A DNA stretch of 63,409 nt, the filler included, from Octopus bimaculoides (lineage: Eukaryota): the NCBI RefSeq assembly GCF_001194135.2. It is 4 parts of 4 records of this genome, joined end to end, with 100 filler letters (N's around TTAATTAATTAA, not from the genome) between each part and the next. Parts side by side here need not be neighbours in the genome. Positions count along the whole stretch, not along the records: positions 17,203 to 44,622 come from NC_068998.1; 3 more parts are not named here. One strand, written 5' to 3'. The position numbers and the translations under genes are program-made. The notes under the pieces were generated by a model. The model was not told where the DNA came from and made no database searches. It worked only from the letters and a program-made list of their open reading frames with translations. Of the stretch, positions 17,994 to 39,964 are shown in pieces (position 1 is the stretch's first letter; each line of letters opens with the position of its first letter).

Positions 17994-18075
17994 GAAGTAC
18001 GATGAATTCCTTAAATGCGTTTTTTTAGGTGTCGACTACTGTCATGACTATTATAGATTTTTCCATTCATGTGCC
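17994..18075 (+). CDS. Gene A exon 3: C-terminal half of six-Cys domain (xKYDEFLKCVFLGVDYCHDYYRFFHSCA)
   Basis: tttttctggtttacag acceptor, GCC|GTAAGT donor; 82 nt, phase 2 to 0 and C-x7-C-x9-C spacing identical to exon 3 of genes B and C. Confidence 0.85.
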
Positions 18076-18642
18076 GTAAGTTGTCTACTATTTTACTTTT
18101 GTTGGGAGACGAGTACGACATAAAGCTAATCAATACAGAATATATCATATTTCTACCTTTTGTTGATTTTTCTTTCGATTCAGACTGGCCTTTGACAAAA
18201 GAAATGCCACACTTTGATGGTGGAAGCATCGGAGATGTTGAACAACATGGGCTTTCATATTGCAACTTTTTTCAATATTACTATTATATTTATTTGCCAA
18301 TAAGTACCAAACATCGAAAGAAAGAGTTGGTCAAACTAATGATGTGTATGTTATATATTCTAAACGCATTATTATTCTAGCGAATGAAGGATCTGAAAAG
18401 TATAATTCATTAACAAACAATGATCATCCTTGTGGCATACTTGATAGATTTTATAAAATAACCTAATGATATTTTAACATCTGCGTCCTTTGAATTTGAA
18501 ATCTATTTTCACTGAGCTTAAACAAACATGTTTAATGCCATAGTTGACATTCAACCACCAGCATTCTCAGGACACTTTTTTCCATCTAACATAAACCTTA
18601 GGTCTTTGGATGATACTCGGTCGGAACATGGAATGAAATGCA

Positions 18643-18705
<63 letters not shown>

Positions 18706-18709
<4 letters not shown>

Positions 18710-19282
18710 GCCCGGATGCAGTAATTATGCCCGGATGCAGTACCAGGCAGTGGCTCTCATGGCTTCTGATCTTAACTGATTGGAAGTGTTATCATGTACA
18801 TTGTTTTGTCTTGGTATAAAAGATGGGCTACAGCAAATATTCTGCTTAATACCACAGATTTGCTTGTCAGTTGTTTGACCTTAACCAGTTGAGCATGTCC
18901 CTTAGTGGCTGATGATATGTGCATCTCTGATCATGAGCATAAGTTGTGGGGGAGCATCATAGCCATGTGTTGAGAGGAATTATTTGGGGTTTGAATAATT
19001 CAACTTTGGAAACATGGGTGTTTTGCTCAACATCGTTAAACAAACCTTATTCAGGGACCTTTTGAGCGGGATGGGTTACTCGACCTGAAGAAAATTCTAA
19101 CTGGGCCCCACCTGCAAGGTCATGCGCTGTTTATCTTGATATGAGATCACCATGTCGCATACATATGGTTGTGATGCATGTGCCTGGTGTACCCTTATCA
19201 GACGGGTAGTCATGATGGGTATATTGGGCTTCGTATATTTTACCCCAGTGTCACTTTGATGGCATGCACTGCTCTCTTACTC
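18706..19282. mobile_element. ~560-bp (TAA)n-flanked element, copy 3 (opposite orientation)
   Basis: Both ends in (TAA)n; short terminal duplication atgcccggatgcagta. Confidence 0.9.
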
Positions 19283-19298
19283 AATAATAATAATAATA

Positions 19299-19373
<75 letters not shown>

Positions 19374-19377
19374 GGAG

Positions 19378-19493
19378 AAATAGGTGGAAAACCGAGTTTA
19401 GTACAGCTGCAGAAGACAAGGCAATTACGGACAGCTAGGATAATTTTCTTTTCCAACAGTCTAATCTGTTGAGTGTATAATAATACCAACAAC

Positions 19494-19550
<57 letters not shown>

Positions 19551-20130
19551 TACAACAACAACAACAATAATAATAAAAAAATAATAATAAAAATAATAGT
19601 ACCACCCTACTAATGAGCTTGAAGGAGTATTACGTATGTGAAAGCATTCAGTGATGATATTGGGATGGAATTTGTTATTGAAAATGTGGTAGCCAACTTT
19701 CCAGAAAGGGAAACTGAACACATCGCATTCAGCAGCAGTGTTGGAGTCATGAACGTACTCGAGTAGGAAGAAACTTACAGTCATCTTGGAATAAATGAGG
19801 GCTCTGGCATTCAACATGCAAGTATGAATGAGAAGAGTTCGTGTCAGTATTTTCCACATGAAGTGGCAAGCCGAATATCGGCATGCAATTGCCTACCCTA
19901 TTGTCTTTTTCGATGTTTTCAAGCACAGCATTGTCCCAACCATTGTCAAAAAAAAAATCTAGCATAACCTGGTTGGCATTTAACAAGGAGTTGGGTTATG
20001 CATCTATTCGGGCACGACATTCAACAAATCTTTTGATCCAGCAGCCTTGAACTCCGTCTTGTTCTGGGACCACATTTGCTCACTTTTTTGTAATCCTCTT
20101 GTCCCTCCCCACAATATGTCAGACTTTCTA
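19378..20130 (+). mobile_element. R4/Dong-like LINE fragments, degenerate
   Basis: LQKTRQLRTARI-like C-terminus after (TAA)n; decayed DIGMEF RT motif near 19660. Confidence 0.5.
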
Positions 20131-36889: not shown

Positions 36890-37290
36890 GAGCAGTACGG
36901 ACTTAAGATGAAATTTTACAAAATAATTTGATAGTATTGAATACATCAACTTTATTTTAGATCACATCTTAATAACCCAACAATCGTTTCAATTATATTA
37001 ACACACACAAAGACACATTCAGTTCTTTCAGATACAGAAACATCACCGTAAACTGTGCATATTTCCTTGGTTGCTTTTGAGGCATTTTCCCATTTACGGA
37101 AAAAGAAAAGCATGAAGTGCCGAAAACGAACTTTCTTATCTTCCATTTTAAATGGTTACAGAATTAACACAATTTATAGGAACATAAACCTTCTTCCACG
37201 AAAAGATAGATTAAACTGTGCTCTAAATCGAGGTGTAGTCAAATCCTATTTTGTAGACTCAGCCACGTTCTAAAATAAGTCGAAAGCTAA
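36890..37290 (-). mobile_element. Internally deleted mariner element
   Basis: ORF 36952-37146 MEDKKVRFRHFMLFFFRKWENASKATKEICTVYGD matches the mariner transposase N-terminal HTH. Confidence 0.8.
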
Positions 37291-37700
37291 GCTACTATAA
37301 ATCGGCACGAACTTTCCGGACAAACCAATACCTGGCTTAAAAGAAGTAACTCTTGAGGTAGATTTGTTTGTTTAAAACCATTCAAGGCGGAGACCCAGCA
37401 TGGCCGCAGTAAAATTATTAAAAGATGTAAAAGAATTAAAAAGGAAAGAAATATATGTCACTAAGCGTAAACAAATTACACGATTATTTACTACATATTA
37501 TGCGTATTAACTTATTTAATGTTGCAAAGGCCGGTCACATACGTATTTATTGGACGTGTAGAAGTTTATTAATGGGGAGTGCAAACTCGATATTCTTTAT
37601 AATTTATATACAGGGAAGCAGTATTTTTTCAAGTATTAGCAAATATTTTAATGTTCGTTTTCTTACTGTGCGACTTCATGTTTCATTTATTCTTTTTCAG

Positions 37701-37782
37701 CACTTACATACAATTTCTGCGTTGCTTTGATACAATAGACCGTGAATGTTATGAATACTTTAAGAACAGGCACATCTGTCGC
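37701..37782 (+). CDS. Gene C exon 3 (TYIQFLRCFDTIDRECYEYFKNRHICR)
   Basis: tttattctttttcag acceptor, CGC|GTAAGC donor, 82 nt phase 2 to 0. Confidence 0.9.
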
Positions 37783-38291
37783 GTAAGCTATTTATTAGCC
37801 TATTTTTTTTTGTCAGGAGTCGAGTAAAATGAAGAATTAGATAGTATAGAATACACCAAACATAAATTTTGTTGATTTTTCCTTGCAATCAAACAGGTAT
37901 TCGACAAAGAAAAGTTAATAAGGTATTCGACAAAAGAAAGGTATGGAATTTAAATGACAAGAGCCATTTCATCATAAACTTAACAGTCGGATATGTTAAT
38001 ATTGCGAATTGTGACCATTGCGAAGCACCGTTTTCTGTCTTCTCAATTACTTTACACCATTTCATTAATTAATATATGACTTAACACTGAGCCTACCATA
38101 TGGGAGAATGAATTTGCATGCTTCAGTTTCTCAATCGCTTAAGTTATAGAGTATATTACATATTATGCTGTGACGTTTTATGGAATCTAGATCACACTCA
38201 GCCTTATATTTGTGAAGATAAAAATAAATACAAATATGTTTCGTATTTATAATTTCATGATATTAATTCATTATTCCCTCTTTTATTTTAG

Positions 38292-38330
38292 TCATGGATG
38301 GCTAAATTAAACACAGGTAACAGAGTTAAG
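38292..38330 (+). CDS. Gene C micro-exon 4 (SWMAKLNTGNRVK), putative omega site N-T-G
   Basis: cttttatttttag acceptor, AAG|GTATGC donor, 39 nt phase 0-0. Confidence 0.85.
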
Positions 38331-38951
38331 GTATGCGATATCATCTTAACTATTTTATCATAATTTTAACTTCAGTATAACTGATACAATTTGTAATTTA
38401 CCACGGAATATATAGCTAATGCAACGTACCGTTTTTGGAACATAACGTTGTACACACAGATTTATTAAATTTCTCAAATATTTTATCAACTACCTAATAG
38501 CATTCCTAGTGTAATATCATAATATAAATTAACACACCCATTATTACTTGTAGTAGTATTATTAACCAACTGCCAAAATTATTACAATATACATCTAATG
38601 GATAATCCGATATCAGTATGGTGCACGTACATTGACATCACTGTTTCTCGACAAGATATAACGATATATACGTGTAGCAATACATGTATAATTTTCATAA
38701 AATTATTACAGCATAAAAGATACCCATTTGCCATTCAAACGCGCAGAAAGTGTGTTAATTCACTTCTTATTTATTATTTCGTAATAACATATTCGTCGCA
38801 CCAACCGGTACGGTGTCACTGACAGTCTGGCATTGCTTTAGTTTCAAAATAGTACTTCAGGTCAAATCCCTTTCACGGCAAATACATTTCATAAAAAGCC
38901 TTTCCCTATCATGTATAAAGTTATACTAATTTACTTCTGGTGCCTTTACAG

Positions 38952-39005
38952 ATGATATTCCAATCAACAATATTTACTGCAGTTGTGTGTATATTACTGA
39001 ATTGA
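38952..39005 (+). CDS. Gene C terminal exon 5 (MIFQSTIFTAVVCILLN*); full product 104 aa
   Basis: gtgcctttacag acceptor; hydrophobic tail then TGA. Confidence 0.85.
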   Translation: MIFQSTIFTAVVCILLN

Positions 39006-39073
39006 TGCATAGAAAAATAGGTTCAATGCTACCACAATAATACAGCTGTGTTATTCCGAAGATTTTAATAAAA

Positions 39074-39157
39074 CTACAGTCATGTGACTCAGAAATATTG
39101 AAGCTACAGTCATGTGACTCTGAAATATTGAAGCTACAGTCATGTGACTCTGAAATA
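39074..39157. repeat. 30-bp tandem repeat x~2.8 in gene C 3' UTR
   Basis: ctacagtcatgtgactc(a/t)gaaatattgaag at 39074, 39104, 39134. Confidence 0.9.
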
Positions 39158-39964
39158 CGTCATCACAGTTAGATGAATGAAAACAGTAAAAACATTTTTT
39201 ATTTCTATTTTACTTCTAATTAAACCATAAAAAATCAATATCTACTTAATTATTTTATAGTTTTACTGAGGCCAACAGGATGGTAGCGACTGCACTGGAG
39301 TTCTGTGTAAGTAGTTTCCATTACTAAGCTTTTCGTAAAATTGCAGGAAGGTTCTTCAGGAATTGCAAATAGGAAAGACACCAGGGGAGACTGAAACTAA
39401 TTTACTTTCACCCCATGTATACCATTCAGTTTCTATGGCAATATATTCAAAATTTTCAGACGGACACGCTTACGTATGCAGTTTGTTAAAATAATGGTTT
39501 CAATTACAAGATTTCTATGTAGATTGCTACAGATAATTATAAGGATTATAGTTATTATATATGAGGCATCAAGTATGTCTGCGTATATCAAAATAACACA
39601 TCAGCACTTTGACTGTCTTAACTTATATTCAGTAGACAGAATTCTAAAACATATATTTCCTCAAATAACCTATAAGCGCACTTTCATAAGCGTACATACA
39701 CACAGACATAGATATATATATATATATAAATACATGCATATATGTGTAGGAAAAAAACGCATCGTACATTTTGTATATGTGTGCGTGTGTGTAAGTGTGA
39801 GTGAATATCGCGAAGCTAACATGGCAGTCCAGAAAAAATACGACGAATGCTGCCGTTGATTAGCTCCAAGAGGTCGACGCCCCTACTTAGCTACGTGACA
39901 CACAAGCCTGTGTCCGTTACAATCTTCGAATAGGGGAGTGCATTAGCTCCCCATGCTAGTTCAG

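Follow-up and report, generated by a model that had tools for sequence, protein, structure and literature searches.

A tandem array of octopod-restricted genes for probable glycosylphosphatidylinositol-anchored six-cysteine proteins in Octopus bimaculoides

The window is a 63,409-nucleotide (nt) stretch of Octopus bimaculoides DNA made of four parts joined end to end, and we analysed the piece at positions 17203–44622, which has a G+C content of 33%. Every base of this piece is identical to chromosome CM046618.1 of assembly GCA_001194135.2 at about 50,233,880–50,261,299 (record position minus 50,216,677 gives the window position). The piece contains three neighbouring paralogous genes on the plus strand, A, B, and C, that encode small six-cysteine precursors. 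We consider it likely that the piece is the distal end of a tandem array belonging to an octopod-restricted family, whose products are probably helical surface proteins held by a glycosylphosphatidylinositol (GPI) anchor and have no detectable relatives.

Exon boundaries were located by tblastn with the B and C proteins, refined on the sequence, and confirmed with a splice mapper that was required to reproduce the NCBI protein exactly (Table 1). All introns in the three genes are GT–AG with phases 1, 2, 0, and 0, exon 3 is 82 nt in each of them, and the spliced products are 100% identical to proteins that NCBI had annotated independently. In a search within the window, B exon 3 retrieves C exon 3 at E = 1.4e-7. 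An initial annotation of the window had described three plus-strand paralogues with canonical splice sites and these same phases and exon 3 length, and splice mapping confirms that observation. The exon maps also translate to the sequences it gave for B (106 amino acids, aa) and C (104 aa), and recomputing the identity of B and C from KRC to the end of exon 3 again gave 23 of 54. Its model of gene A needed revision. In place of one 39-nt stalk exon, for which a search gave no candidate in gene A, there are two stalk exons of 36 nt, located by paralogue DNA alignment together with the NCBI protein. Only the 3′ part of gene A lies inside the piece; exons 1 and 2, the latter encoding Cys3, are upstream of it. 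Nor are the genes hidden or easily missed, as had been proposed, since NCBI calls all three (LOC128249830–832, "uncharacterized") together with an isoform X2 of gene B. The X2 product has neither the signal peptide nor Cys1–3, so X2 is probably a non-productive transcript.

Table 1. Coding exons and assembly gaps in the analysed piece, in window positions; P numbers are our protein labels
Feature	Position	Strand	Description
Gene A (LOC128249830, P0004, 117 aa) exon 3	17994–18075	+	82 nt, enters in phase 2; encodes Cys4–Cys6
Gene A stalk mini-exon 1	20455–20490	+	36 nt, phase 0–0, RKILIEQERRLK; extra stalk-exon copy
Gene A stalk mini-exon 2	22389–22424	+	36 nt, phase 0–0, ERLRNGSSSQNK; candidate omega site
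Gene A last exon	23147–23206	+	60 nt; hydrophobic GPI-type tail MLFTAAAVTAFVGTLLMHN, then stop
Gene B (LOC128249831 X1, P0001, 106 aa) exon 1, coding part	27573–27612	+	40 nt; signal-peptide core; next intron phase 1
Gene B exon 2	29468–29567	+	100 nt; end of signal peptide and Cys1–Cys3; next intron phase 2
Gene B exon 3	31385–31466	+	82 nt; Cys4–Cys6 and FLRCFD motif
Gene B stalk mini-exon	32247–32285	+	39 nt, phase 0–0, AIMGKIDSSNQTK; candidate omega site D81/S82
Gene B last exon	32923–32982	+	60 nt; hydrophobic tail, then stop
Gene B isoform X2 (P0002, 84 aa) alternative first exon	31028–31101	+	in intron 2, 307 nt past the 10-N gap
Gene C (LOC128249832, P0003, 104 aa) exon 1, coding part	34622–34658	+	37 nt
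Gene C exon 2	36142–36244	+	103 nt; Cys1–Cys3
Gene C exon 3	37701–37782	+	82 nt; Cys4–Cys6
Gene C stalk mini-exon	38292–38330	+	39 nt, phase 0–0, SWMAKLNTGNRVK
Gene C last exon	38952–39005	+	54 nt; hydrophobic tail, then stop
Assembly gap	25111–25293		intergenic, between A and B; adjoins (TA)n
Assembly gap, 10 N	30712–30721		within B intron 2; donor 1,145 nt before, acceptor 664 nt after
Assembly gap	36419–36797		within C intron 2; (TA)n on either side
Assembly gap	41541–41559		downstream of C; adjoins (TA)n

The phases 1, 2, 0, and 0 are common to all six genes of the family that we mapped, and exon 3 is 82 nt throughout except in P0010, where it is 88 nt. A symmetric phase-0 exon of 33–39 nt encodes the stalk, which runs from Cys6 to the candidate omega site; B, C, P0006, and P0010 each have a single copy of this exon, A has two, and P0007 has three (positions 16170–19225 of our locus L002). 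Stalk length therefore varies by exon duplication, and the copy number gives stalks that differ in length and charge. The other coding exons of the six genes are 37–46 nt (the first), then 91–103, 82–88, and 54–69 nt, separated by phases 1, 2, and 0. The term micro-exon genes, applied earlier to this family, is overstated. Coding exons measure 36–103 nt, only the 33–39-nt phase 0–0 stalk exon is micro-exon-like, and most of the coding sequence lies outside symmetric exons of 36 nt or less. The schistosome micro-exon genes (MEGs) resemble the octopus family in encoding small secreted or surface proteins from short exons, and the variable copy number of the phase-0 stalk exon recalls MEG exons. 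The MEGs differ in that symmetric exons of 6–36 nt hold most of their coding sequence, whereas the core exons of the octopus genes are 82–103 nt and asymmetric, and the sequences are unrelated.

The six cysteines of B and C are spaced C-x7-C-x14-C-x8-C-x7-C-x9-C, the first gap being x6 in A, and the family as a whole follows C-x7(6)-C-x13/14-C-x8-C-x7-C-x9(11)-C. Across 12 aligned sequences, neither the six cysteines nor F52 varies, and L26 and Y49 are nearly invariant. All nine proteins examined for their termini begin with a hydrophobic core (mean Kyte–Doolittle hydropathy, KD, 2.5–3.7), and a cleavage site can be read by the (−3,−1) rule at ITA|E in B, IFA|L in C, and VNG|K in A. All nine likewise end with a Ser/Gly/Asn patch, a polar or basic spacer of 5–8 residues, and a hydrophobic end of 15–17 residues, with a core KD of 1.8–2.8 and at most one charged residue among the last 16. 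In gene B this C-terminus reads D81-S-S, then NQTKMS and a 17-residue tail; in gene C it reads N80-T-G, then NRVKM and a 16-residue tail. Judged by rule, a signal peptide together with an omega patch, a spacer, and a tail that lacks a cytosolic part fits the layout of a GPI precursor, in agreement with the architecture proposed in the initial annotation. For the mature domain, AlphaFold2 predicts with moderate confidence (predicted local distance difference test, pLDDT, 78.2; predicted template modelling score, pTM, 0.63; 10-sequence alignment) five helices at residues 2–17, 19–25, 34–44, 48–55, and 61–68, in line with the helical domain expected from the outset. The full-length model is poorer (pLDDT 62).

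The family was delimited with a HMMER profile built from the three mature domains, which was run against 1.84 billion representative proteins at a cut-off of E < 1e-3. This gave 13 matches, of which 12 are octopod and one is spurious. The spurious match is P0009, a metagenomic repeat protein (E = 9e-5) from a metagenome run, with three short matching stretches and no six-cysteine pattern. Most matches are O. bimaculoides proteins encoded on CM046618.1, and nine O. bimaculoides genes stand behind the matches and the cluster members (LOC128249821, -822, -829, -830, -831, -832, -940, -945, and -946). One match is the O. vulgaris model CAI9735853 (257 aa), in which several genes are fused, and one is an unspliced genomic contig from SRR11869385 that is ~71% identical to the B exon-3 region and hence probably derives from a more distant octopod. 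Word-indexed homologue searches returned O. bimaculoides proteins only. The proposal of a lineage-specific family is therefore upheld by an exhaustive profile search that finds it only in octopods.

The family is larger than the three genes first recognized. The array comprises at least seven genes at 50.18–50.256 Mb, in the order 108-aa gene, P0006, P0011/15, P0007, A, B, and C, and a second cluster at 49.36–49.39 Mb holds P0010 and P0013; the loci number at least ten in total. Within each locus that we fetched, the genes have a single orientation. The 108-aa gene, which we reconstructed, has the same cysteine core with one extra cysteine. Gene C is the last family gene at its end of the array, with no family exon at 39.2–44.6 kb of the window and no called gene within 10 kb. 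A minus-strand match at 40387–40425 (E = 0.14), considered as a possible relic tail exon, was rejected as chance. The literature, searched for the LOC identifiers and for octopus families of GPI-anchored or cysteine-rich proteins, yielded nothing relevant, and the family appears to be undescribed apart from the "uncharacterized protein" entries already in RefSeq.

Searches against known families were largely empty. Pfam scans of B and C, of the 12 members, and of the mature domains gave nothing at threshold; sub-threshold matches to SH3_retrovirus, RE_MamI, Phage_int_SAM_5, IgA0_D2, and Auxin_canalis were judged spurious. Two profiles searched against PDB sequences returned noise only (for example a GPN-loop GTPase at E = 0.09–0.8) and no neuritin chain, and Foldseek against the PDB gave no match for either the full-length or the mature-domain model. 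Nothing significant thus emerged in Pfam, PDB sequences, or Foldseek that would tie the family to one already characterized.

The octopus proteins have no Pfam match to the families that the initial annotation had set aside, Ly6/uPAR, the insect OBP/CSP proteins, and saposins, and the DUF19-like check that it had suggested was also run. None of the 12 members matches DUF19 (PF01579) at E ≤ 10, and there is likewise no Pfam match at E ≤ 10 to OBP/CSP, saposin, CFEM, or LTPG. Ly6/uPAR proteins such as CD59, Lynx1, and Bouncer are, like the octopus proteins, small, cysteine-rich, GPI-anchored surface or shed proteins. They often occur in tandem clusters, often evolve fast, and act as ligands or receptor modulators. 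They differ in being β-structured with 8–10 cysteines and a C-terminal CCxxxxCN motif, whereas the octopus domain is predicted to be all-helical, has six cysteines, and has no Pfam match to PF00021. The octopus family is an analogue of Ly6/uPAR and not a member. The OBP/CSP, saposin, DUF19, fungal CFEM, and plant LTPG domains share with the octopus domain the plan of a disulfide-stapled helical bundle, and CFEM and LTPG proteins are often GPI-anchored, but all five differ from it in cysteine number and spacing.

The O. vulgaris chromosome OX597831.1 carries a syntenic array, onto which the orthologous exons were projected by alignment. The B orthologue there has an intact open reading frame (ORF) of 106 aa with all splice sites present. 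Between the two species, B exons 2–3 are 83–87% identical compared with 87–88% for their intron flanks, C exons 2–3 are 75–83% identical (flanks 75–81%), and A exon 3 is 82% identical (flanks 85%). The B tail exon, at 98%, exceeds its flanks at 87%. The ratio of nonsynonymous to synonymous rates (dN/dS, Nei–Gojobori) is 1.06 for the whole of gene B and 1.39 for its mature domain (24 nonsynonymous and 4 synonymous changes), 0.94 and 0.70, respectively, for gene C, and 2.9 for the 71 codons of gene A that could be compared, whose exon 3 has 14 nonsynonymous and no synonymous changes. The pooled mature domains give a pN/pS of 1.1, which does not differ from 1 and is incompatible with an omega of 0.2 (P ~ 4e-33). 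The dN/dS of paralogues B and C (0.52) is uninformative, dS being near saturation, and the orthologue comparisons were used instead.

Against this turnover, the cysteines are retained at 15 of 15 positions compared, for which the neutral probability at the observed dN is ~1e-4, and every cysteine, reading frame, and GT–AG site is kept between the two species at K ~ 0.13–0.2. Because pN/pS is near 1 and yet the cysteines are retained, the scaffold is under constraint, and the remaining residues are replaced at the neutral rate or faster. The data support rapid diversification on a fixed scaffold, and with orthologue dN/dS near 1 and exons conserved no better than the flanking introns, the description of the family as rapidly diversifying holds. 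The C-orthologue region is found twice in O. vulgaris, at positions 40750–46700 and 58480–65150 of our locus L009 (OX597831.1), the two copies being offset throughout by 17.73 kb. In copy 1, exon 2 is intact and exon 5 is missing; in copy 2, exon 2 carries a 1-nt frameshift and exon 5 is present. The doubling reflects either a tandem duplication of recent date accompanied by decay or an artefact of the assembly or of haplotypes. In the O. vulgaris annotation, B and the C copies are merged in a single 257-aa model across 59 kb.

The piece contains four runs of N, every one of which adjoins a (TA)n microsatellite (25110/25294, 30711, 36418/36798, and 41540). The codon divided by intron 2 stays in frame across the two intronic gaps, as GA|G in B and GA|C in C, and exon 2 joins exon 3 directly, with no additional exon, in four paralogues at other loci and in the N-free O. 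vulgaris locus. Because the split codon is in frame and these exon 2–3 junctions are identical, no coding sequence has been lost in the gaps. Besides (TA)n, the piece is abundant in AAT/ATA, ATAC, AGAT, and TG simple repeats. A segment 80–150 nt upstream of the ATG is common to B and C (27426–27479 and 34492–34545, 83% identical), and a further, inverted copy precedes C (27425–27549 versus 33848–33964); the segment may be a dispersed repeat or a common promoter or 5′ untranslated region element. Three perfect copies of a 24-nt unit lie at 27171–27241, ~330 nt upstream of the gene B ATG, and 2.8 copies of a 30-nt unit lie at 39074–39157, starting 69 nt past the gene C stop codon. Downstream of the array, the end of the piece truncates a plus-strand reverse-transcriptase fragment at 44369–44622 (WVDYQKAFDSVPH..., Pfam RVT_1, E = 7.5e-5) that is probably what remains of a retrotransposon. 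Scans for Rfam families and for tRNAs gave no matches in the piece.

Several observations weigh against reading the array as a family of functional anchored proteins under diversification. The mature-domain model is of moderate confidence only, the synonymous changes behind the rate estimates are few (4–12 per gene), and a dN/dS near 1 is equally expected from relaxed constraint on the sites outside the scaffold. Both O. vulgaris C copies are defective as assembled. The exact A, B, and C proteins are absent from the Logan transcript contigs, so that their expression rests on the NCBI gene calls. At the extreme, the loci would be decaying, non-functional ORFs or over-predicted models under neutral evolution, for which one may also cite the exons conserved no more than introns and the clearly non-canonical isoform X2. 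We regard this as extremely unlikely, given the joint neutral probability of cysteine retention and the intact frames and splice sites noted above, the six cysteines that are invariant among paralogues only ~30–45% identical, the exon-phase structure conserved in six genes, and the clear constraint on the B tail exon. That exon bears on a further alternative, in which the proteins are released as secreted cysteine-rich peptides of a salivary or venom, pheromone, or reproductive kind and the C-terminus is a removed propeptide or a weak tether. Families of toxins, pheromones, and reproductive proteins typically combine small size with tandem arrangement, an unchanging cysteine framework, and dN/dS of 1 or more, and GPI proteins too can be shed, so the anchored and released readings overlap. 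This alternative is nonetheless very unlikely in our view. The C-terminal module, with its small-residue patch, its 5–8-residue spacer, and its uncharged hydrophobic end, is conserved in all nine members; in gene B it is the best-conserved exon between species, and its 98% identity against 87% in the flanks argues for a selected GPI-type processing signal. Furthermore, no toxin or pheromone family in Pfam is matched.

The most probable alternative, though we judge it unlikely, is that these proteins form a strongly diverged and expanded offshoot of neuritin (NRN1/CPG15), a neuronal signalling protein, and act as neuritin-like ligands, anchored or shed. Residues 32–64 of gene A match positions 24–56 of the Pfam NRN1 profile (PF15056), over the Cys3–Cys5 core, at 14.8 bits and E = 0.033 (E = 0.016 for the mature domain alone). 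Neuritin and the octopus proteins share a signal peptide, six cysteines, a GPI-type tail, the C-x8-C-x7-C core, and, after Cys3, an aromatic residue at +3 and Phe at +6. The family hidden Markov model scores real NRN1 above 98.9–99.9% of cysteine-fixed shuffles, which is suggestive (P ~ 0.001–0.011). Against PF15056, the three NRN1 sequences used here reach 134, 85, and 133 bits, and two mouse peptides reported with residue numbers in PMC10123642 agree with them. The PF15056 match is well below the gathering cut-off of 27 bits, is made by one of 12 members only, and is equalled in gene A by the spurious SH3_retrovirus match (E = 0.008). An hhalign comparison of the family with NRN1 gave a probability of 1.4% (P = 0.036) over 27 columns of the Cys3–Cys5 core only, and the neuritin hypothesis was itself picked only after the weak PF15056 match had appeared. 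The spacing of neuritin, C-x9-C-x17/24-C-x8-C-x7-C-x27-C, agrees with that of the octopus family in cysteine number and in the x8 and x7 gaps, whereas the other octopus gaps are much shorter (x7 against x9, x13–14 against x17–24, and x9, or up to x11, against x27). Human and zebrafish neuritin have a sub-threshold Pfam match to the nematode DUF19 family (E ~ 0.008), and the octopus proteins have none.

Neuritin is GPI-anchored or shed, acts in both forms, and is well conserved between species (PMC10123642). Its precursor, like those of the octopus, is small, with a C-terminal GPI signal that begins a few residues past Cys6. To our knowledge, neuritin is a vertebrate protein of low copy number, with two human genes, NRN1 and NRN1L, whereas the octopus genes number at least ten in tandem and evolve at about the neutral rate. 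We regard neuritin as the nearest analogue of the octopus family in function and architecture and not as an established relative. Homology between the two seems distinctly unlikely, and it is improbable that the array is a true, extremely divergent neuritin/CPG15 expansion in which a GPI-anchored neuronal plasticity ligand would have been multiplied to at least ten fast-diversifying octopod copies. Were the link real, the neuritin family would reach beyond vertebrates, and its expansion would parallel that of the octopus protocadherins and suggest that neurons of the octopus use a combinatorial surface code.

Our preferred reading remains that of an octopod family of probably GPI-anchored proteins, and it partly supports the interpretation in the initial annotation. 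Each of these small genes, of five to seven exons, encodes a precursor of 99–130 aa in four parts. Exon 1 and the start of exon 2 provide a putative cleavable N-terminal signal peptide, and exons 2 and 3 a domain of ~60 aa with five short predicted helices and six invariant cysteines that presumably pair in three disulfides. Next comes a short polar stalk, for which one to three of the symmetric 33–39-nt phase-0 exons code, and the stalk and last exons supply the Ser/Gly/Asn-rich site, the 5–8-residue spacer, and the 15–17-residue hydrophobic C-terminus that lacks cytosolic residues. GPI transamidase would then exchange the tail for a GPI anchor, leaving a small helical knob, stapled by disulfides, exposed on the outside of the cell membrane. 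The family grew by tandem gene duplication combined with duplication of the stalk exon. Comparison of octopus species shows the frames, the splice sites, and the cysteine scaffold preserved, with the remaining residues diverging at about the rate of intron DNA. We infer that these proteins most likely serve as a diversified set of ligands or recognition molecules that are tethered to the membrane and may also be shed; in function they would resemble neuritin or the Ly6-type GPI proteins.

At present the family is an orphan one that already has RefSeq entries, and the finding is modest. Octopus genomes contain thousands of lineage-specific genes without known function, and this family offers a compact and tractable example, with a new predicted helical six-cysteine domain, a clear modular exon plan, and at least ten tandem genes. 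Amino-acid turnover at about the neutral rate on a fixed scaffold, as seen here, is a signature common among recognition molecules of immunity, reproduction, or cell–cell signalling. If its members prove to be tissue-specific, for example to neurons, suckers, or gametes, they would be candidates for surface-code or ligand molecules peculiar to octopods.

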